Shown here: positions 12,887 to 33,525 of the stretch, piece after piece
Layout of the letters: each line of letters starts with the position of its first letter
Numbering within the stretch: the first letter of the stretch is position 1
From: Hyphochytrium catenoides
Taxonomy: Eukaryota > Protista > Hyphochytriomycota
Assembly: GCA_900088475.1 (NCBI GenBank)
Contig: FLMG01002853.1
Coordinates: 1-34,384 of the forward strand
Length of the DNA stretch: 34,384 nucleotides
Reading direction: 5' to 3'
Program-made: the position numbers and the translations under genes
Notes under the pieces: model-generated
Told to the model about the DNA's origin: nothing
Databases searched by the model: none
The model's input: the letters and a program-made list of their open reading frames with translations, nothing else

Positions 12887-14552
12887 ATGGGGTCAGGACA
12901 GTCTAAACAAAACTCTCAGCAAAGTGCTACAGCGCAACCGTCATCGTCCTCAGCTCGAGATGGGGTACCTCAGGGGTCCAGTGCAAAGGCAACAGGCGGT
13001 TGCCCGGTAGATCACAAGAAAGCAGCTCCAGAGGCTGCGGCTACTGCCGCTAAGCACTTGGCAGCTTCTGAGACGGATGGGTGCCCTATCAGCAAGAAGG
13101 GAGCAGGAGCGGCGGCTGCGCTAGGGGGAGGCTGTCCCGTCAAGGGGCAGGAAGCAAACTCCGTACCTGTGTACAACGTTTATGGCGAACAAATTGACCC
13201 GAAGAACATGATGCCCAACGCTAACCAGGAGCCTGGACCGGGACAGAAGTACCCAATTGACACCACCCGTGTGCAGTCTTCAATTCCTAAGGGAGGAACG
13301 GAAGGAACATGGCTCTATCCATCTCCTCAGATGTTTTATAACTCGCTGAACAGAAAGGGCAAGGGCGATGATGTCAATGAGGCAGATGTGGATGTGATAG
13401 TTGCCATCCACAATAACATGAATGAGCGCACCTGGAAGCAGATCGTCAATTGGGAAGCGGTCTACGGAGTGTGAGTCAATGGCACCCTTTCCACCCTTGC
13501 GCCTTTGCTCTTCAAACTCTCCTTTCTTATTCTTCTTCCTCCTTCCCTAAAAAGGCTAACACCTCTGTTCCCCGTAGCCCTCATCCCAAGCTGCATCGCT
13601 TTATGGGACGACCCGATGAGTATAGCCCGCTGGCAAGGCTCAAGTACTGGCTTGGGTATGTGTCTCTTGAGGGGCCTTATTTTTAACCTTTAGTGACCTC
13701 TCATACTACTTTACTGCTTTGAATTCTGGACTTGGTCGGCGGGAACGCTGCTCCTCGACGTCTTTTCTTTACTGTCTATCTCCGTACCCGTTGCTCCTCG
13801 ACGTCTTTTCTTTACTGTCTATCTCCGTACCCTTCCACTATCAGTCAACGTACAAGCCACATCATTGCGTATCCTTCTTCACTGTGTACTTCCTCTTATG
13901 GATTCATCTTCCCATGTTCAGGGTCCGACCCCTTCCGTTCGACCGTCACGACTGGTACATCCTCCGCGACGACGGGAGTGAAGTGCGCTATGTGATTGAT
14001 TATTATCACGATGAAGAGAAGAGCAAGTTAGACGAGGTCCCTGACTTGGACTCTGAGGACAAGATCAAGAGCGTCGATATGGTGGTCAGGCCAGCTTTAG
14101 ACTCTCCATCCGCCTTGCTGCACAGGATGAAGTATGGCTTGCTTGGAGTTGGAGCAACTCCACCGCTACTGGGACAAGGAGAGGAGGGGCATTATTCACA
14201 GTCTTCCTCTTCAGCAAACCTAAAGGCTGACGAGGAGATGTCGGTGGAGGAGATGAAGGCAATTTTTGACAAGATCAGAAGTAACTGTGGGGAGAAGCTC
14301 ATTCAATTGAGAAGTAGTCAAGGAGAAGAGGAGCAGCACAGAGCTGCGACAGCACTTAACTACTGCATGGCGACGGTGGTGGGCTGCAAGCAGGAGGTGA
14401 AGGCCTTCGATGCAGCAGTTGCTCGCGGCTCAGATAAGGATATGGAGGCTGCGTTTGGCAGTATTTCGGAATGTATAGAGAGGTTTCAACAGAGGGCGAC
14501 TCCCGCAATGAAGGCCGAGGCTAAGGCTAAGGCACAGGCAAAGAGTAGCTAA
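12887..14552 (+). CDS. HCCS: Holocytochrome c synthase (cytochrome c heme lyase, System III), ~430 aa
   Basis: Exons 12887-13470, 13578-13655 and 13922-14552. N-terminal MGSGQSK, three CP motifs (GCPVDH, GCPISK, GCPVKG), [28 protein letters not shown] (heme-ligand His), [27 protein letters not shown]. Confidence 0.96.
13749..13832. repeat. Two-copy tandem duplication (43-bp period, 41 bp identical) in HCCS intron 2
   Basis: TGCTCCTCGACGTCTTTTCTTTACTGTCTATCTCCGTACCC at 13749 and at 13792. Confidence 0.95.
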
Positions 14553-20509: not shown

Positions 20510-20901
20510 ATGCCGCGCAAGAAGGTGGACGAGCGCGTGCGGACTCTCATTGAGAACTCCGTCAAGACAAAGCACAGAAGCTTCTTCGTTATCGTGGGAG
20601 ACCATGGGAAGGATCAGGTAAGGATCAATCTCTTCCTTTCTTGCCTCGTCGATTGCGCCACTTTATCAAGGCTCTTATGAGCTCTGGCTTGAGGGTCAAT
20701 CTATTCTCCTGCTGCATACATCTATGGCCGCGCGCCGGGTGCTAATGTTTCCCATCCAGGTACCAAATCTTCATTATATCCTCTCAAAGGCTCAAGTCAA
20801 AGCCCGCCCCAGCGTCCTTTGGTGCTATAAAAAGGAATTGGGATTCTCCAGGTATAGGGGCACCATTGAACCTTCTCAGTCTTACCTCTTGTGTCTTCTG
20901 T

Positions 20902-20956
<55 letters not shown>

Positions 20957-20971
20957 TTCTTTCTTTCTTCG

Positions 20972-21003
<32 letters not shown>

Positions 21004-24000
21004 ATGCTTTCCGCTTCATAAAGCGCTCTCACCTTTCCTGTCTGCTTCTCCTCCATGTTCACTTCCCTTCTTGGGCAACATACTCCACCTCCTTGGATTG
21101 CTCTCTTTCACATACCTTCTTTCACTGCTTCTTTCCTTCCGCACGTAAAACGTCCTCTGCTATTGTCTCTACTCCTTAGGGTCTCTCTTTCCTTTTCCGC
21201 TCTCCCTGTGTCCCTTGGCCTTCTCTCTCATTCACCGATGATCTATGTCTCTTTTGGCAACAGCCATCGCCAGAAGCGGATGCGTCAAATAAAGAAGATG
21301 ATACAGCGGGGACTCTACGATCCCGAGAAGGATGATCCGTTCGATCTTTTTATCTCTTCAACCAATATACGATGGATGTACTACAAAGACAGCCACAAAG
21401 TACTTGGGCAAACCTTTGGAATGCTGGTCCTACAGGTGCGTTAAACCTTTCACTGCCACGAAGAGGGCGAGCGAAAAGAGAATGGGGCACGAGAAGGAGA
21501 CAAGAGTGAGGTCTCTACGTAGATCGTTTGGCCCACTTACTCTTATTCTATGCGTAGGACTTCGAAGCTTTGACTCCCAACCTACTCGCCCGAACCATTG
21601 AGACCGTAGAAGGAGGAGGTATCGTCGTCCTTCTTCTAAGGACAATGTCCAGCTTGACGCATCTATATAACATGACCATGGTGAGTGTGAAGAAACAGCT
21701 ATCCGGAAAGGACAGAAAAGCTGTCCTTCTTGAAAACTCAATCAGTTATTAGCCAGATATAGTACCTACCTCCCATCTCCACTTCCCGCCGTACATTGAC
21801 TATGTTTTATGCGGTCAGGACGTACACGCTAAATTCCGGACAGAGGCCCATAAAACCGTGGTTGCTCGATTCAACCAGCGCTTTATCCTCTCCTTCGCCC
21901 ATTGCAAGAACAGCATTGTTCTTGATGACGAACTGAATGTCTTGCCGATCTCCAGACACTGTAGAGACATTGTGCCCATACAACAGGTACGTTCGGACGA
22001 TGGTGAGCTCTGCACCGGACACATACAAGGAAAAGGCATTTGCCTTGTGCGGAAAGAGAAAAATGTATTCTTCTTGGGGAGACTGCCGCAAAGAGAAGTG
22101 AGAGGCCTCCTGAAGTCTGAGAGCGCTATTTATTTCCAGGAGGAAGATGCCGACAATACGTTGACGCCAGAACAAAAGGAGCTCAAGGAGTTAAAAGAGT
22201 CCCTTGCTGATACTCAGCCAGTAGGCAGTCTGGTTAACGGTGCGAGGACACTAGATCAAGCAAAGTAAGGCCTCTCTTTCGTACTTTTCTCTCCTCGACT
22301 TTTTTAAACGCCGACGACTGCTCCTAGTAATCTTTCTCCTGACTTCTCGGATACAGTTCTGGCGCTCGTGTACGCTTCAGCTTCCTTGGTACCCTCATCT
22401 CTCGTGTTCCACTTCTCTTTGTGGTCGCATCCTCCCGTCTCCTACTTACTGAACGAAGATTTTCAAGAGAATCTCTGTTACTACATGGCTGATAAGCTGC
22501 TCTCAACTGCAACTCTCGTCTTCCTATTAGAGCAATCTTAACATTTGTGGAAGGCATAGCGGATAAGTCCTTGAGAAGCACCGTTGCTCTTACGGCAGCA
22601 AGAGGAAGAGGCAAATCTGCATCGCTCGGAACAGCAATTGCTGCAGCAGTTGCCTACGGCTATAGTAACATATTCGTCACTGCCCCGACTCCTGAAAATT
22701 TGAAGACTGTCTTCGAGTTTATCTTCAAGGGCTTTGATGCTCTCCACTATAAGGAACATCTAGACTATGAGGTCAGTGAACTGCCACCCCGATTGCTTTT
22801 TGAAAGCGCAGTCTACAGAGACCTAGTAGACTATAGCAGGATGAGGAGGCTGCCTATAGAGGATACGCCGATGAACGAGGAGGATCGCGGATGAGACTCA
22901 CCTTCCCGTTGCTCTTTACATGTAGATTATCCAAAGCACGAACCCAGACTTCAACAAAGCTGTTGTGCGAGTTAACATCTTCCGAGAGCACCGCCAAACG
23001 ATTCAGTACATTCAGCCCAATGATCATCATAAGTTGGCACAGGCAGAGCTCGTGGCGATTGATGAGGCCGCGGCAATCCCTCTTCCTGTAGTAAAGAAGG
23101 TATGTTAGCGGGAAAGATAGAGGTGGATGGTGCCGAAAACTTATATTAGGAAGGGTGGCTCTCTATAAAGATGCGCCCAGCCAGACGAAAGAAAGAAGTA
23201 AGATGGGAAATCGGGCGCGTGGATCACAGCGGAGAGATGAGGTTACTGAGAGTGTGCGCGCGAGAGAGAGACTTCTTTATCGCGATGAAAAAGGGAATTA
23301 AGTCTTTTTACTCTTCTTTGGCGCTTAGCTTCTAGGGCCTTATCTGGTGTTTATGTCGTCAACGGTGAATGGTTATGAAGGGACGGGACGGTCTCTCTCC
23401 CTTAAGCTGATACAGAAGCTTAGAGAACAGCAGAACGCGAGTGTCTCGACGGCAGCTTCTCAGGCGTCTGCCACCATCCATAACTCTGGCGGCGTCAAAA
23501 AGAAAGAGAGGAAGGTGAGCATGAGGCGCATATATTGTGTATAATATATCTATTTCTAGGGGCTACCTACCTACCTATAGTTCTTAGAGCTTGTATCTCT
23601 TCCTTTCCGCGTTAGAAACTCTCGTTCCTCCGGTAGTACTTGCATGGCATGAGACCTTGACGATTTCGTGTCCCTGCGTCCCTATAAAGGCGATTTCTTC
23701 TTTTTCTTATAGAAATGAACTTACCATCAATTGTGTCGTTCGGGCAGGTTCATGAAGAGAGATGGCAGGAGGAAGCAAGAGCAGCAGCGGATGCTTCAAC
23801 TGGTATCAGCGGTACAGGTCGCATTCTCCGTGAGATAACTCTGGAGACCCCTATAANNNNNNNNNNNNNNNNNNNNNNNNNNNNNNNNNNNNNNNNNNNN
23901 NNAGCTATCGTCTTGTCTCTGGCACCCCTCATCCTTCGGAGTGCGAACTGTACTACGTGGATAGAGATTCTCTGTTTTCCTATCATAAGGTAAAGCGGAT

Positions 24001-27000: not shown

Positions 27001-27336
27001 CCCACCAACTTTACTTCCTCTTCATCGTTTAGCAAGGTCACCGTCTTTTCATCCTCATGTGATCTTATCGCCAGTGCGCATCTATTAGCATCCACTGACT
27101 GCTAAATCTCTATGTTTAGGTTCGCTATCGGAGGCAAAGACGAGGACTGGGAGAAAGCACTGAAGAACGGGGTAAAGGGCACTGTCAGCATCAAGTCAGA
27201 TAAGGCTAAAGAGAAGGAGAGTCAAAAGAATGGAAAGAGAAAAGAGGCAGATGCTGGAGAGGAAAGAGCACAGGGAGAGAAGAAGAGCAAGAAGCATAAA
27301 CCCTCTCAAAAGGCGAAGAAGAACAAAGGGAAGTAA
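20510..27336 (+). CDS. NAT10: RNA cytidine acetyltransferase NAT10/Kre33 (18S rRNA/tRNA ac4C)
   Basis: About 20 GT-AG exons: MPRKKVDERVRTLIEN, VLWCYKKELGFS, QDFEALTPNLLARTIETVEGGG, RFNQRFILS, Walker A TAARGRGKSASLG, IDEAAAIPLP, SSTVNGYEGTGRSLSLKL, SHYKNQPNDLQLMSDAPAH, GDLIPWT, GNAT RIAVHPDVQNMGYGSRAL, LTGEHTAIM, Lys-rich tail ending TAA. N gap at 23857-23902. Confidence 0.97.
20903..20996. repeat. (CT)n microsatellite in NAT10 intron 2
   Basis: Seen directly. Confidence 0.9.
23857..23902. other. Assembly gap within NAT10 coding region
   Basis: Run of N. The frame differs across it, so the gap length is only an estimate. Confidence 0.97.
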
Positions 27337-27843
27337 TGCTTTTGCATGCTTCTGTAAGATCGAGGACGGGGCACGAAGCTAAATGATACTCTTTTCTTCA
27401 ATATCGCAATGCGACCACCTTTATGTCACTCCCGCTTTGGCCATATATCTATGGGCTGCTCCTCGGCTAGTGCCCATCTCGGCCTTACTGTGGTTCGCAG
27501 AATTGCGGATGTGTCGGCAGGGCCTATATTGTTGACTGTGCTAGCTCTTTGATGTGAGCCTTATGTACGAGTGGGTCAGCAGATCGCCATTCACGATAAT
27601 AACTCGCTTCGAGAGAGTTACTACTGGTGATTTGAACATGCTTGACCACACCTGCCGCCTCTCCGCCCGCGGCTTGATAAATATATATATCCATCCTTTA
27701 TCCCGTGTACCACTAGACACGACTGTCTTCTATATATTTCCTATGATACTAAGGCTCTTTTGCTAAGGCTCTTGCTTCAAAGGAGGCTATATTCGGGGTG
27801 AGCTATGGTTGCTCGAGTGCCTACGACTTTTTGCATGTGCTCC

Positions 27844-30800
27844 TCAGAGATTGAGGAAAGAGACCACTTTTTCTATGGCTGCATTTTGATACACGTGGCT
27901 CCACTGGACCCCGTTGTGCCTTGCTATACCCTGGATGTCGGGGGGAAGCTCCGATAAGGCCGGCCACTCAAACTCATGAGTCACTGGCACCACTGTTTTC
28001 TGCCACTGTATAGCATGGGCGATCTCTTTCCGAACCTACATAACGGGACGAGTTCAATAGTCAGAACCTTTCTAATCTGAATAAAGGTTCGCTCCTCCAA
28101 AGCTGAGGTCCCATAAGCTATGATGCTGGGCGTATAGCCTGGCTTCTAGATTTCTACTGGTACGATTTGTCTAGACCAGCCAACGCCGCTCTTTCGGTGC
28201 AAGGAGAGGAAAAGGGGAGGACAGAGAGGACAGTAAAGCAGAAGATGTTTTGGACGTACCCAGTCACTGTTCATTGGATCCTCTATGCATCGGTCCAGCG
28301 AGCCTTTGGTCAGTATAACGACCACATTCTTTGAGCACCGTAGATACTCCAAAAGGGAGTTGTCGAACTGCGGTCCATGGAGCATGGGACAGAGGATCAT
28401 TAGGGGATGGGAGGAAGATGTACAGCAGAATGAGAGGGTTGAGCTCATGCGGTCCACAACCAAGGAGGAACAGCAAAACACTCTCCGCTTATTGAAAAAC
28501 AAGAATACTTCCGTCCAATGGCCGCTTCCCAGCAAGAAGATAGAAGTGCTAAGGCCCGCTCTCGTACCTGTCCTGGACCCAGATTATCAACGTCGAGGAA
28601 GACTCTTAGCCCCCTCTGCGTAAGACAGACCTACAGGGGTGAACAACGAACGTAAGAACCTGCTACCTTCTCCGTCTATAGAAAACGCTTAGCCCTTCCT
28701 ACAGCCCGCCAGGGCTTTTAGTGGTTCACAAAATCACCATTCTAAGTTAGCTTCTTCTTTCTTTCAATCAGGTGCATCTGCAGTGTGAACCACCTCCTGG
28801 GTGCGGGCTTGCACAACCACTGAGGATCTTACCTTGATGAGTTGGGCTAACTGGCTCCCATTGGATCGCCGGTAAGAAATAAATACGTCCACAGCAGTCT
28901 GGCTGGGTGTTCTGATCAGGCCCAGGCCATGCTGGCCATCTGCCGACTTTCTCTCTCCCTCCTCTGTCAGTCGCTTTATATCCCTAAGAATGCGCAAGCG
29001 GTGGACTCCGTGAGAGATCCCCATATCTCGCAGCAACTCATCTGTTAACTGCGGAAGGATCTCGCCTGCAATAGCGGGTGAACACGCAGCACGTCATTAG
29101 GAGATGGAGAGATATGTCTTCAATTGGTAAGACTCAGAATTTGATCGTTGAAAGGGAGAGGCGAAACCAGAGCAGTGCAGGTGCCGGTCCAAGCTAGGCA
29201 AAAGCGAACCAGCCCTAAAGTTACGAGCAAAGTCGAACGGCAGAGGAAGGATGACGCTTGTAGATGAGGGTGAACAATCAAGACCTACCATCCACCCAGG
29301 CTTCAAAGAAGTTCTGCTCATAGCATGCAAATCGTTGCCTTCGTACCCAACGGCAAACATCTTCCACCGTCCAACTGTCTGTGCTTTTCTCTTGGGCGTC
29401 CGCTTCGCCTTCCTTCTTTCCAGCTTCATTATAGTCCGGCACTCTTTCCATTAATCTCCTCAAAAGATCAGCAGCGAAGCGGTAGATAAAAGCGTCTGTG
29501 TCCATGGCGCAATCCTGAATTACCGCCATCGTCTCTACAATGTCGATCGGCAACGTGCACAAGGTAAATTTAGTGACTCAACTGTACCCGTACAACCAGA
29601 AGACGTAGGATAGCTCAGCTAGAGATATTAGGGATCGGTGTGGAAGGCATCACTCAATTCGCAGCCATGGGTCTAGGCAGATGGAAGGTGGGCCTATAGC
29701 GCCAATGTTTGAACGTGTGACCCTTGTGAAAAGAATCAGCCAAATTGAAGCACGGATACTTAGAGGTAGATTCACCTTCTCTCCTGAGCAGATCGCCGTT
29801 CTCCGGTACACTCTTGATACAGCGACCAATGCGGTTAAGAGCCGCAATACCTACTAGGCGAACGACTGGTAGGTCCTTTCTCCATGCTAAACGGACAAAG
29901 CTATCGCAGTTCTTGGCAGTCCAAAGGATGTAGGTGAACAGCGCGCCAAAGTCTGCGCTTGTGCGTAAATAGCGCGCTACTTTGTGCAACGCCTGGCTCT
30001 TGCGCACGTAAAAGGCTGACGAGTCATGAAGACACATTAGGGCAATAACTCGACAGGCACCGAAGGCGATATCATCCGTAGCTGCAAGGAGCGGAATGAG
30101 CCACTCATGGGCCTGTTAACAAAAAGTAAGCAAGCATTAACCCATCAGCTTCCCAACGGATAATGCGAGAAGAGCGAGATGTACTCTTCAACCGACTAGA
30201 TTAGGGGGTACCATCACGCTTAGCAACCGACGGATTGTAAAAGAGGGGGCTAAAGGAAGCAGAGCAAGGAAGAACTTGAATGCGCTGGCAGCAGGGAAGA
30301 GAAAAGAGGGCACGACGAGGCTTCACGCTTGGCGCGGTCCTTGACCTAGGACGGACCTGAAGCTTGGCCAGCTCCAAGCAATAGTCCTCAACTAGGCAGA
30401 AGTTGTTGATTGCAATTAGGGCGGAAAGCTCCAGTGCCGGGTTTAAGGACTTGCAGCAGTCAATCAACGAAGGAAAGGTCCCACAATCTCGTAGAAGTGG
30501 AAGCTTATCGTCAAAGAGCGCGAGGCGGCTAACGATTGAACACGCGTTGAGTCTGCACCAATTTACCGAGACGAGAGCACAAATACGAGGTGTCAGCCGA
30601 CGAGCCTGATGGCTGCTATTGCCAGGGAATCACCAGGTCTACAAAGACTCTAGTCGCAGAAAGCTTGTTCACACTCACCGGGTTCGGATACAGTGGCCAA
30701 ACCCTAATAGAGAGACAAGGGTTTGCAAGCACCTCTCATGAGTAACGCGAAGGGTCCTCTCGTCGCTGTGGCGAATGAGGTTCCACAGCGCCTCTACTGC

Positions 30801-32735
30801 AGCAGACTGGGCATCACCCGGCAGTAGATCATGTTCGATCATCAGCTGCAGCAGCTCCACACCGCCTAGTGTGTCAACAAGATCATCAACGGAGTTACGT
30901 CTTGATGAGGGAAGTTCGCAAAAGTGACAAAGTGCAATAGAACTGGGGAGCAGCGACACCAAGGAGACTTTAACTGGATTGTCGCAACGGAGATGCTTAG
31001 TCTAGTCGGACATGGCGATTAAGAACATAGAGAAGAACTTTGCAAGCCACTAACCTGCCGCTGCAATCTCTTCTCTGATCTTGTTCTCAAGCCGTCTTGC
31101 TTCCTCTTTACCCCCGTCCGTCCAAGCAGACCACCGCAACAGGGCATATGACCCATTGCGGAGTACGGTTTCTGAGGAAACCTCCGCCTCGGGCACTCCT
31201 TCTGAGTGCTCGTCTATGCATCTTAGAGCGCTGGCACCAAAGATGCTATCCACCCGTCCCCAAGCATATCGAGGAGGGGCGGAAAGTGTTCTGTGAGGTG
31301 ACGACGAGAAGTTGGTGGCTTCCTCATCTTTGGCTTGCTTCTGCAACAAGCAGAGATCCTCCATGCAATCCTGGGTATTGCAGAGCGCAGGGAGTGAACG
31401 CCGCATCAAGGCGCAGATCCTTTTTATCTCGGCCCTTTCTTCGTCAGGTGCCAGCATTCCTGGCACCCCTGCACAGCCGACCACCCTTCTGTACAGTTGG
31501 TCATCGACTCCAGGGCCTTTTCTAAAGCCCAAGCCATAGAGGAGTCGCACCGCAGCAAACTCCTCCACAGTCGGATCCCGTCCATCCCTTCCTTCAAACT
31601 GCCCGTATCCCACCCCTACAGCTGGATATGCTGCATGGACTTTCCTTCTCCTTTGCCTCGCGTGGTATTTTAACGCACTAACAGCTAGAGCGCGGCCAAT
31701 TCCTTGGCGCCGCCTCTCTGGTTCAACGCAAAGGAAGTCCAGTGTCCCATCCTCCTGCGTAAAGACTGTGTCTGCTAGGACGAGACCGACCACCCGACTT
31801 AGAGAAAACTTGGCATTGGAAGACACCTCAAGGGCAACGACAAGATTCTTGCTATTCTCAAGGAGAATTTCTATCGCTTCATCTTCAGCTAAGGTGTCAG
31901 GGAAGCTCCTTATTAGAAGCTGGAGAGAGGACAACGGCAGCAATGATCAGCTCCGATGAAGAAGACGAAAGAACGGATCAGATTGACGTAGGATGTAGAC
32001 GAAGCTCGGACATGCCCTGTGGCGGGGAGAGAGTTGGACGCGCTGCTAGGTGCAGCAATATAAAGAGACAGGAGAGGGTGCATGCCATTCAAAGAGGGGA
32101 AGAGAGCGAGAGAGAGACAAAAAGAAAGACTTATAACCGCGAGGCAGAGATTGATACAAGGGAAAGGATAGAAAGAGCAACCTAAGAGATCCGCAGACTA
32201 AAGTTAGAGAGGACGGGCGTATGGGTATGTTACTGAAGTCTTCTGACGAGGGACGAAGGGCATTGAATTGGCTCCTTACCTGCTTGCACTGTTGCTGCAG
32301 CTCCATCGAGCATGCCTCGAGCTGCCCTACCCACTCCTCTTGGTCCTTGACCAAGTCATAGGCTGACCCCAGCTTGATCCCCTGCGGCAGCTTCTTCGAT
32401 GAGGGCATTGCAGAGGGGATGAGGTCAAAAACCATGGAAAAAGAGCAGTCAAGCCTGTCTCTTTCTCTGTCCGAGGAGGAAGAAGTGAGAGAGTGGAAGG
32501 AGCTTGATCTCTTCAGGGGCAACTCTGAAAAGTGCGCAGACGTAGAGCTGTCAACTGGTCCCTCCACCTGGTTATGTCTATGTCCAGGTGTCCCCGCCCT
32601 CCAACTGCTCTCGACCGCCCGGCGGATGGACGATGAGGAGGAAGAAGCGGAGCCCTGAGACGTCATAGCTGGCACCGCGCCAATCTCTGAGAGCTGAAGT
32701 CTGGGAGGCCCAATACTCTGTTTGATTGTCTCCAT
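27844..32735 (-). CDS. SARM1-like protein with N-terminal GNAT domain: GNAT-ARM-SAM-TIR, ~996 aa
   Basis: Ten phase-consistent GT-AG exons: 32735-32280, 31919-31055, 30973-30679, 30552-30357, 30112-29776, 29534-29289, 29065-28833, 28630-28568, 28367-28260, 28035-27844. TIR: DVFISYRRSNGSQLAQLIK..VFLDVDNLGPGQFD..SLDRC..DWVRKEIAHA..FEWP..LPPDI..NGVQWSHVYQNAAIEKVVSFL. SAM: WTVEDVCRWV..F..VDGEILPQLTDELLRDMGI..HRLRILRDI. ARM: AHEWLIPLLA, LLRRLMERVP. GNAT: LCVEPERRRQGIGRAL. The start codon is tentative. Confidence 0.88.
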
Positions 32736-32835
32736 GTCTCGCTCCAATCGCGGCTCCCAGTAAGATTGATTCCTAAGGGCTGGAGTCTCTTTAACTGTCC
32801 TATCTGTCGCCAGCTTCTCGGTCCTCTCTTCTGTC

Positions 32836-32902
32836 TCCAGCTTGTATGTCTCTTCAAAGCCTGCCTATCCAGCTTGTATGTCTCTTCAAAGCCTGCCTAT
32901 CC
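32836..32902. repeat. Perfect two-copy tandem duplication, 32-bp unit, upstream of the SARM1-like gene
   Basis: TCCAGCTTGTATGTCTCTTCAAAGCCTGCCTA at 32836 and at 32868. Confidence 0.95.
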
Positions 32903-33425
32903 CTGTATCTCCGACCGTCTGCGTGTCTCTTTCAATATTCTGTGAGCTCTTTCCAGGTGTAGAAGGCTCTGTAGCTATCTTTGTCTCGTGTCAACCGAGT
33001 ATCCTAGTTGCTTTCTGATGTCTTCTCCCGTCCACCGGTGATAACGGATGAGCGCTTCCGGTGTTGAAGGCTCTGGATGATGCACTTGATTCTTATCAGA
33101 CTCTGAGGCCTGCCTGCCTGGCTCTTACCAGTGCGTCCAAGAGGAAGCGCTCATAAGGTCGGCCCGAGTAGATTCTTCAAGAAGGTTGCCAGCGTTGGTC
33201 TCTCCACCGTCTCCTCATGAGGAACTTGGGCCGGTTGTGTCTCACGACGGACCCGTTTGGTACCTCTTCCACATCCAGGCGAGGGGCTTGTTGCTTGTTG
33301 CCCCTGACGCGGTAGACGTTGTTCCGACTGGCCCCACTTCTGCAGGGCGTGTAACCAAGAGGGAAGAAGGAGGGAGGGAAAGCCTGCTGTGGGGAGGAGA
33401 GAGGCAACATCGAGAGCATTGCTGA

Positions 33426-33525
33426 GAGGGAGGAAGAGAGAGAGAGAAGGGGGGAGAGANNNNNNNNNNNNNNNNNNNNNNNNNNNNNNNNNNNNNNNNN
33501 NNNNNNNNNNNAGAGAGAGAGAGAG
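33426..33525. repeat. (GA)n tract spanning N gap 33460-33511
   Basis: Seen directly. Confidence 0.85.

Follow-up and report, generated by a model that had tools for sequence, protein, structure and literature searches.

A SARM1-like gene of Hyphochytrium catenoides with a probable GNAT domain spliced onto its ARM-SAM-TIR exons

The contig FLMG01002853.1 of the soil protist Hyphochytrium catenoides (GenBank assembly GCA_900088475.1, positions 1–34,384), referred to below at its full length of 34,384 nucleotides as the window, carries a 10-exon gene on the minus strand (32735..27844), whose spliced model forms one open frame. Its predicted product contains, in this order, a Ser-rich N-terminus, a domain of the GNAT acetyltransferase type, a helical linker, armadillo (ARM) repeats, one SAM domain, and a TIR domain. 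The GNAT exon is spliced in frame onto the ARM-SAM-TIR exons, and the RNA support for this splice is direct though thin. It is quite likely that the fusion is real and that the protein is an enzyme of the SARM1 type. According to the preferred reading, to which we assign a probability of roughly 0.45, the GNAT-type domain may serve as a second metabolic input to the ARM lock of a SARM1-type nicotinamide adenine dinucleotide (NAD+) hydrolase (NADase).

Splicing and structure of the gene

Parts of the gene are carried by three runs labelled as RNA, and most of it by three DNA runs sharing one organism label; RNA runs X1–X3 and DNA run X4 were compared with positions 27700–33000. The junction between the GNAT and ARM parts is seen in a 213-nt RNA contig from X2, which matches 31143–31054 and then 30864–30742 (90 and 123 nt flanking the joint, respectively). 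With the cut shifted by one base, it defines an intron 31054..30866 that joins 31055|30865 in frame. An earlier sequence-only reading of the window had placed the donor at 31055|31054, which is indeed used in RNA, and the acceptor at 30974, which would result in an 81-nt intron. The acceptor observed in RNA, however, lies 108 nt further downstream (30866, intron of 189 nt), and the branch-like GACTAAG reported for the shorter intron is not that of this acceptor. Both acceptors are in frame, and the proposed continuity of the GNAT exon with the ARM exons is thus preserved by the 189-nt intron.

The earlier ten-exon model has GT..AG at all borders, compatible phases at all nine introns, as had been claimed, and 996 amino acids without an internal stop. 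In comparison with it, the RNA-supported acceptor drops 36 residues, and exon 3 then starts with GGVELL, a typical armadillo-repeat start. The length of 189 nt is also closer than 81 nt to those of the gene's other introns (126–360 nt). The revised coding sequence consists of 2883 nt (960 codons), is open throughout, and has the following layout, in which the two GNAT motifs (31742–31686 and 31559–31524) are located where the sequence-only reading had placed them.

32280..32735, minus strand: exon 1, residues 1–152; Ser-rich; first ATG of the frame at 32735; strong donor GTAAGG at 32279; phase 0
31055..31919, minus strand: exon 2, residues 153–441; GNAT-type domain at about residues 153–300 (31919–31476), then a helical linker (about 140 residues)
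31686..31742, minus strand: motif A of the GNAT-type domain, formed by strand beta4 and helix alpha3; includes the acetyl-coenzyme A (acetyl-CoA) pyrophosphate loop
31524..31559, minus strand: motif-B-like helix ending in RLLYGLGF; Tyr280 at the usual position of the general acid
30866..31054, minus strand: intron 2, 189 nt, GT..AG, phase 1, seen in the X2 RNA contig
30679..30865, minus strand: exon 3 (revised), residues 441–503; opens with GGVELL; first clear armadillo repeat
30357..30552, minus strand: exon 4, residues 503–568; canonical armadillo repeat
29776..30112, minus strand: exon 5, residues 569–681; ARM-like helical repeats
29289..29534, minus strand: exon 6, residues 681–763; end of the helical region, acidic linker, first half of the SAM domain from about 29379
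28833..29065, minus strand: exon 7, residues 763–840; second half of the SAM domain, linker, TIR box 1 (DVFISYRRS, from 28895)
28568..28630, minus strand: exon 8, residues 841–861; TIR strand betaB and BB loop
28260..28367, minus strand: exon 9, residues 862–897; middle of the TIR domain; ends in Asp-Trp
27844..28035, minus strand: exon 10, residues 898–960 and stop; C-terminal part of the TIR domain; Glu901 at 28026–28024

RNA contigs support three of the nine junctions, namely 31055|30865, 30679|30552, and 29776|29534. The second is represented by a contig from X3, a soil metatranscriptome, which ends at 30679 with a loose end equal to the first eight bases of exon 4; the third occurs in an X3 contig having 19 nt on one side, which is under the 31-nt bridging rule. 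In addition, an RNA contig of X1 covers 31096–31291 inside exon 2. As for the 3' part of the gene, a metagenomic protein fragment of 135 residues found with exon 7 (P0001) aligns without gaps over junctions 6|7, 7|8, and 8|9 of the spliced model.

The GNAT exon (31919–31055) belongs to an open frame of 297 codons, which opens just after a stop at 31943 and contains no ATG ahead of the domain. Consequently, and in line with the sequence-only reading, which had denied this exon a start codon of its own, the start must come from an upstream exon. Regarding base composition, the GC content at third codon positions of the GNAT exon (0.53) is inside the range of the other exons, and there is therefore no sign of a foreign insert. 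Neither exon 1 (152 residues, Pfam) nor the linker of about 140 residues behind the GNAT-type domain shows a family match, and the PDB sequence search with the linker gives nothing relevant.

Upstream of the gene, a perfect 32-bp tandem duplication (2.1 copies, 32836–32902) is located about 100–165 nt ahead of the putative start codon, probably within the promoter or 5' leader. An assembly gap (a run of N at about 33459–33510) with CT-rich low-complexity flanks follows at about 0.75 kb upstream, and because of it a further upstream exon is hard to exclude. Within intron 1, the CT-rich low-complexity stretch 31948–32124 has about eight times the local DNA depth and is probably a simple repeat common to many sites of the genome.

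DNA run X4 contains two haplotypes, each at about half depth, with non-coding differences. None of its 27 half-depth single-nucleotide polymorphisms (SNPs) falls into the 2883 coding bases; all belong to introns or the 3' flank, and those within 27700–30350 to introns 4, 5, 6, and 9 and the 3' flank. The five indels at depth within the gene are likewise all intronic. Differences between sources that do affect exons number five, of which four are synonymous and one is Gly373Glu in the linker. At the intron rate, the 865 nt of the GNAT exon should contain about four variants, whereas the listing has none there; this is modest support, and the assembled contigs leave a gap at 31368–31524 inside the exon. 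Altogether, these values suggest that the organism is a heterozygous diploid and that the exons are strongly constrained.

Domain assignments

Domain searches were run exon by exon. For exons 7, 9, and 10, SARM1 and TIR-1 are the sole significant matches in PDB, and they follow in order and without gaps. Exon 10 (63 residues) aligns with human SARM1 639–699 with an E-value of 1e-14 and 29 of 61 residues identical (48%), which places Glu901, the fourth residue of the exon, on the catalytic Glu642 of SARM1 (chain 7knq). Exon 9 matches human SARM1 603–638 (E 2e-4), with its terminal Trp on residue 638, and exon 7 matches both TIR-1 (E 1.8e-9) and human SARM1 521–581, box 1 included. Exon 8 alone has no PDB match to SARM1; its 21 residues, however, exactly fill the SARM1 gap 582–602. 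The EE loop, H-V-Y-Q in comparison with H-(D/E)-Y-Q, keeps three of the four residues. The case for a SARM1-class TIR domain with the catalytic glutamate is, as far as sequence can tell, strong.

The SAM domain (residues 733–798), which is split over exons 6 and 7, is reported by Pfam as SAM_1 (27.6 bits) and SAM_2 (21.8 bits). Its exon 6 part matches the SAM domain of Aveugle, and the single domain aligns with either SAM domain of TIR-1. Regarding the ARM region, designed armadillo repeat proteins are found with exon 4 (E 3e-9), and an engineered ARM protein (E 5e-4) as well as, weakly, beta-catenin with exon 3. Exon 5 has no match in the PDB sequence search; the Atlas feature search assigns it at 0.96 to Arm, KAP, ARMC9, and LRRK2-ARM clusters. 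The predicted ARM and SAM assignments can be considered good. The sequence-only reading had described the protein as a SARM1-like ARM-SAM-TIR enzyme, of which the SARM1-class TIR, the ARM repeats, and the SAM domain stand. The SAM domain is single, whereas SARM1 has two in tandem.

The word-index search returns no matches for exon 10, the scan of JGI metagenomes with the exon 10 protein is also empty, and the word-index search with exon 7 yields three SARM1-like pieces, all short and from contigs of less than 2 kb, which do not bear on the fusion. Two SARM1-like eukaryotic fragments, L001:227-532 and L002:1013-1258, share the exact stretch DVFISYRRSNGSQLA with the Hyphochytrium gene. Their open reading frames (ORFs) end at most four residues from the end of its exon 7, which hints at an intron position near, and possibly shared with, this exon boundary. 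L002 also has an ORF with a second SAM domain upstream, as in animal SARM1.

As for the GNAT exon, Acetyltransf_1 (Pfam) reaches 23.5 bits, above its curated cut-off of 20.7, at profile positions 42–94 of 116, and a GNAT profile match, which the sequence-only reading had called for, is thus obtained. Acetyltransf_7, Acetyltransf_10, FR47, and Acetyltransf_CG match the same stretch of about 55 residues around motif A, all below their own cut-offs, and NCBIfam reports weak matches to RimI and MshD without pointing to a specific GNAT subfamily. The four weak matches of the PDB sequence search are all GNATs, and so are the top clusters of the Atlas language-model feature search (0.94). The acetyl-CoA loop R-x-x-G-x-G is intact (R222-R-Q-G225-I-G227) and aligns with the loops of MshD and ORF14. 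From the motif pattern alone, the helix at 31559–31524 would correspond to motif B and Tyr280 to its usual tyrosine; between strand beta5 and this helix lies a Gly/Asp-rich insertion of 20 residues. Taken together, the profiles and the motif make a GNAT domain in exon 2 probable.

Searches for relatives of this exon give no matches for the GNAT core in the word index, none in the JGI metagenome scan, for which the final 26 nt of exon 2 served as DNA query, and no similar GNAT among the defence systems of PADLOC.

Possible role of the GNAT-type domain

By homology, the last two thirds of the protein would work in the manner of SARM1: the SAM domain would mediate self-association and hold several TIR domains together, and the armadillo repeats would keep these TIR domains apart until a signal arrives. 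Once released, the TIR domains would pair and cleave NAD+ through Glu901. The GNAT-type domain, being placed on the regulatory side, would bind acetyl-CoA or CoA, or acetylate its own protein or a partner, and this input would tie the destruction of NAD+ to the acetyl-CoA status. What the analysis shows is the structure of the gene, its in-frame joining in RNA, and the identities of the domains, that of the GNAT being probable; NADase activity, autoinhibition by the ARM part, and any role of the GNAT-type domain are what we infer. Given the fusion, the chance that the domain acts as a regulatory input falls somewhat short of even. That the domain gates a SARM1-type NAD+ destroyer, functioning as a sensor of acetyl-CoA or acyl-CoA or as a self-acetylating switch, is unlikely.

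Several observations weigh against a second metabolic input to a SARM1-type ARM lock. Regarding the fusion itself, the splice in question is found in one contig with a depth of 2.1, the RNA status of X2 is guessed and its organism label is unlike that of the DNA runs, and exon 1 together with its junction to exon 2 has no RNA support. As for the GNAT-type domain, the profile match is confined to motif A and its surroundings, about 55 residues in all, and exceeds the cut-off by a small margin. The single-sequence AlphaFold models of exon 2 and of the 150-residue GNAT core, with predicted local distance difference test (pLDDT) values of 34.9 and 37.9, respectively, are both unusable. The exhaustive HMMER search (1.84 billion representative proteins, E 0.001) finds no relatives of the GNAT exon; this library evidently does not include the proteins of this genome, since the search also missed the exon's own protein. 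Because the exon has no homologue among these representatives, conservation of the fusion cannot be shown.

The remaining points concern the SARM1-like part. In the PDB sequence search the ARM region has no SARM1-specific similarity, and the pocket for nicotinamide mononucleotide (NMN) or NAD+ may be absent from it. No second SAM domain is found, SAM_1 and SAM_2 of Pfam each matching once. The BB loop reads D-N-L-G-P-G (residues 855–860) in comparison with E-(R/K)-L-E-A-G in the family, with the Leu and the last Gly as the only residues in common; at the first position the change from Glu to Asp is conservative, and at the second the basic residue is lost. These first two positions have been reported to be important for catalysis (PMC7075850). 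The single SAM domain, the altered BB loop, and an ARM region without SARM1 features thus caution against assuming control identical to that of SARM1.

The GNAT-type domain might instead form an independent second catalytic arm at the end opposite the TIR domain, with the ARM and SAM parts controlling or assembling both. The intact motif A and motif-B Tyr suggest an active enzyme and not a mere binding module, and the linker of about 140 residues separates the domain from the ARM repeats. The GNAT toxins TacT and AtaT occur in conflict systems, and bacterial GNAT toxins acetylate charged tRNA. The defence GNATs of PADLOC, however, show no similarity to the domain, no specific subfamily is matched, and no substrate is indicated, which leaves a second arm doubtful, though with a real chance of being right. 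An explanation of the opposite kind, in which the segment is a decayed remnant of exon shuffling and serves as a spacer or dimerisation surface only, neither binding a ligand nor catalysing a reaction, would agree with the marginal profile scores confined to motif A, the lack of homologues among the 1.84 billion proteins and in the word index, the missing confident fold, and the insertion ahead of the motif-B helix. Against decay, however, stand the perfectly kept R-x-x-G-x-G loop, the lack of half-depth SNPs in the exon, and the fact that the lone amino-acid difference (G373E) falls in the linker, outside the domain; we find it distinctly unlikely.

The locus could also yield two products, namely a GNAT-only protein ending at TAG 31050 and an ARM-SAM-TIR protein starting at Met449, with most transcripts retaining intron 2 or ending there and the spliced contig being a minor read-through form. 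Such an arrangement is prompted by the stop codon directly behind the donor (a retained intron 2 would stop the frame at TAG 31052–31050), by the in-frame ATG of Met449 (30842–30840) located 24 nt into exon 3, and by the single low-depth contig spanning the junction. The X2 contig, however, has a clean GT..AG splice that keeps the frame, to which chance alone would give 1 in 3, and the 189-nt gap, being within the size of the other introns, is too short for a terminator and a promoter. The sequence-only reading had named transcripts ending at TAG 31050 as evidence against itself; no RNA contig of X1–X3 covers the unspliced intron 2. Two separate products are accordingly very unlikely. The least probable option, and a far-fetched one, is an integrated decoy of the plant NLR-ID type, in which the GNAT-type domain would imitate one of the host's acetyltransferases, itself the target of a parasite or virus effector, and the TIR domain would be set free once the decoy is modified. 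The position of the domain on the sensor side of the protein fits such a role; however, no related stand-alone GNAT to be mimicked is found among the 1.84 billion proteins, in the word index, or in the window, and the protein has no NB-ARC/STAND module. We also know of no pathogen of the host organism.

If the sensor or switch reading is true, one protist protein would weigh acetyl-CoA and NAD+ for metabolic shutdown or death, a regulatory logic unlike any known for TIR enzymes. SARM1 is both a model for metabolite-gated NAD+ destruction and a drug target, but little is known of its pre-animal history or of how varied its regulatory inputs are. The gene can be regarded as a natural experiment on rewiring the ARM lock, and it bears on whether free-living microbial eukaryotes use the TIR-driven loss of NAD+ for cell death or immunity. 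Its weight is limited to one gene in one lineage, with thin RNA support for the fusion and no conservation seen.

Genomic setting and relation to known systems

The gene is located among ordinary nuclear genes, which encode a P-type ATPase, a CobW protein, and a cytochrome c heme lyase. The latter (12887–14552, plus strand) is represented by two ORFs covering profile positions 6–174 and 236–296, presumably two exons of one gene. Contamination with animal DNA is ruled out by these neighbours and by a DNA depth equal to that of the surroundings. On the plus strand, the ORF at 20724–21176 has a weak match to TmcA_N (the NAT10/Kre33 type of RNA cytidine acetyltransferase), and the ORF at 27112–27336 encodes a Lys-rich tail; the two may form one long plus-strand gene converging on the 3' end of the SARM1-like gene. 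The TmcA_N-type ORF is unrelated to the fused GNAT. Copying of the GNAT from this neighbouring NAT10-like gene was considered as well and is ruled out, there being no paralogous piece of the SARM1-like gene within the window.

According to the literature, SARM1-type TIR domains (group 24) were limited to metazoans in a survey of 2020 (PMC7075850). Choanoflagellate homologues of SARM1 with the catalytic Glu had been reported in 2018 (PMC6040629), and a few SARM1-like proteins are described from amoebae, green algae, and dinoflagellates in a 2026 preprint, which states that TIR-regulated programmed cell death in microeukaryotes has no evidence at present (PMC13142454). The gene fits this sparse pattern of SARM1-class TIR domains with a catalytic Glu outside animals. 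PMC6040629 and PMC13142454 describe these proteins with no mention of stramenopiles or of an acetyltransferase domain, and the literature search yielded no paper in which a GNAT is combined with SARM1 or with a TIR domain, in agreement with the sequence-only reading, which knew of no GNAT in SARM1 or TIR-1. Its proposal of an undescribed protist protein thus applies to the GNAT combination; SARM1-like protist proteins as such have been reported (PMC6040629, PMC13142454).

In comparison with animal SARM1, C. elegans TIR-1, and Drosophila dSarm, which are ARM-SAM-SAM-TIR hydrolases of NAD+, the predicted protein has the same order of ARM, SAM, and C-terminal TIR, the latter aligning gap-free with human residues 561–699. 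Box 1 (DVFISYRRS) and the catalytic Trp-x-x-x-Glu segment are conserved, and the EE loop agrees with its motif at three of four positions. In SARM1, NAD+ or NMN is a ligand of the ARM domain, and a ring is built from the SAM domains (PMC9153377). The differences are the extra Ser-rich N-terminus, GNAT-type domain, and linker of about 140 residues ahead of the ARM repeats, one SAM domain instead of the tandem SAMs of the octamer ring, and the BB loop DNLGPG. With the GNAT superfamily, the protein shares motif A with its R-x-x-G-x-G loop and the motif-B-like helix with a Tyr at the usual spacing; it differs in belonging to no subfamily, in the insertion before motif B, and in being fused to a NADase of the cell-death type.

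A GNAT and a nucleotide-sensing allosteric module are combined in one chain in the mycobacterial cyclic AMP-binding protein acetyltransferase. There, however, the GNAT is the output, whereas here the output is likely the TIR NADase. Among the systems compared, the gene is therefore not a new kind of system; it is a SARM1-like NADase with a GNAT, a lineage-specific variant occurring in a lineage from which this family had not been reported before.

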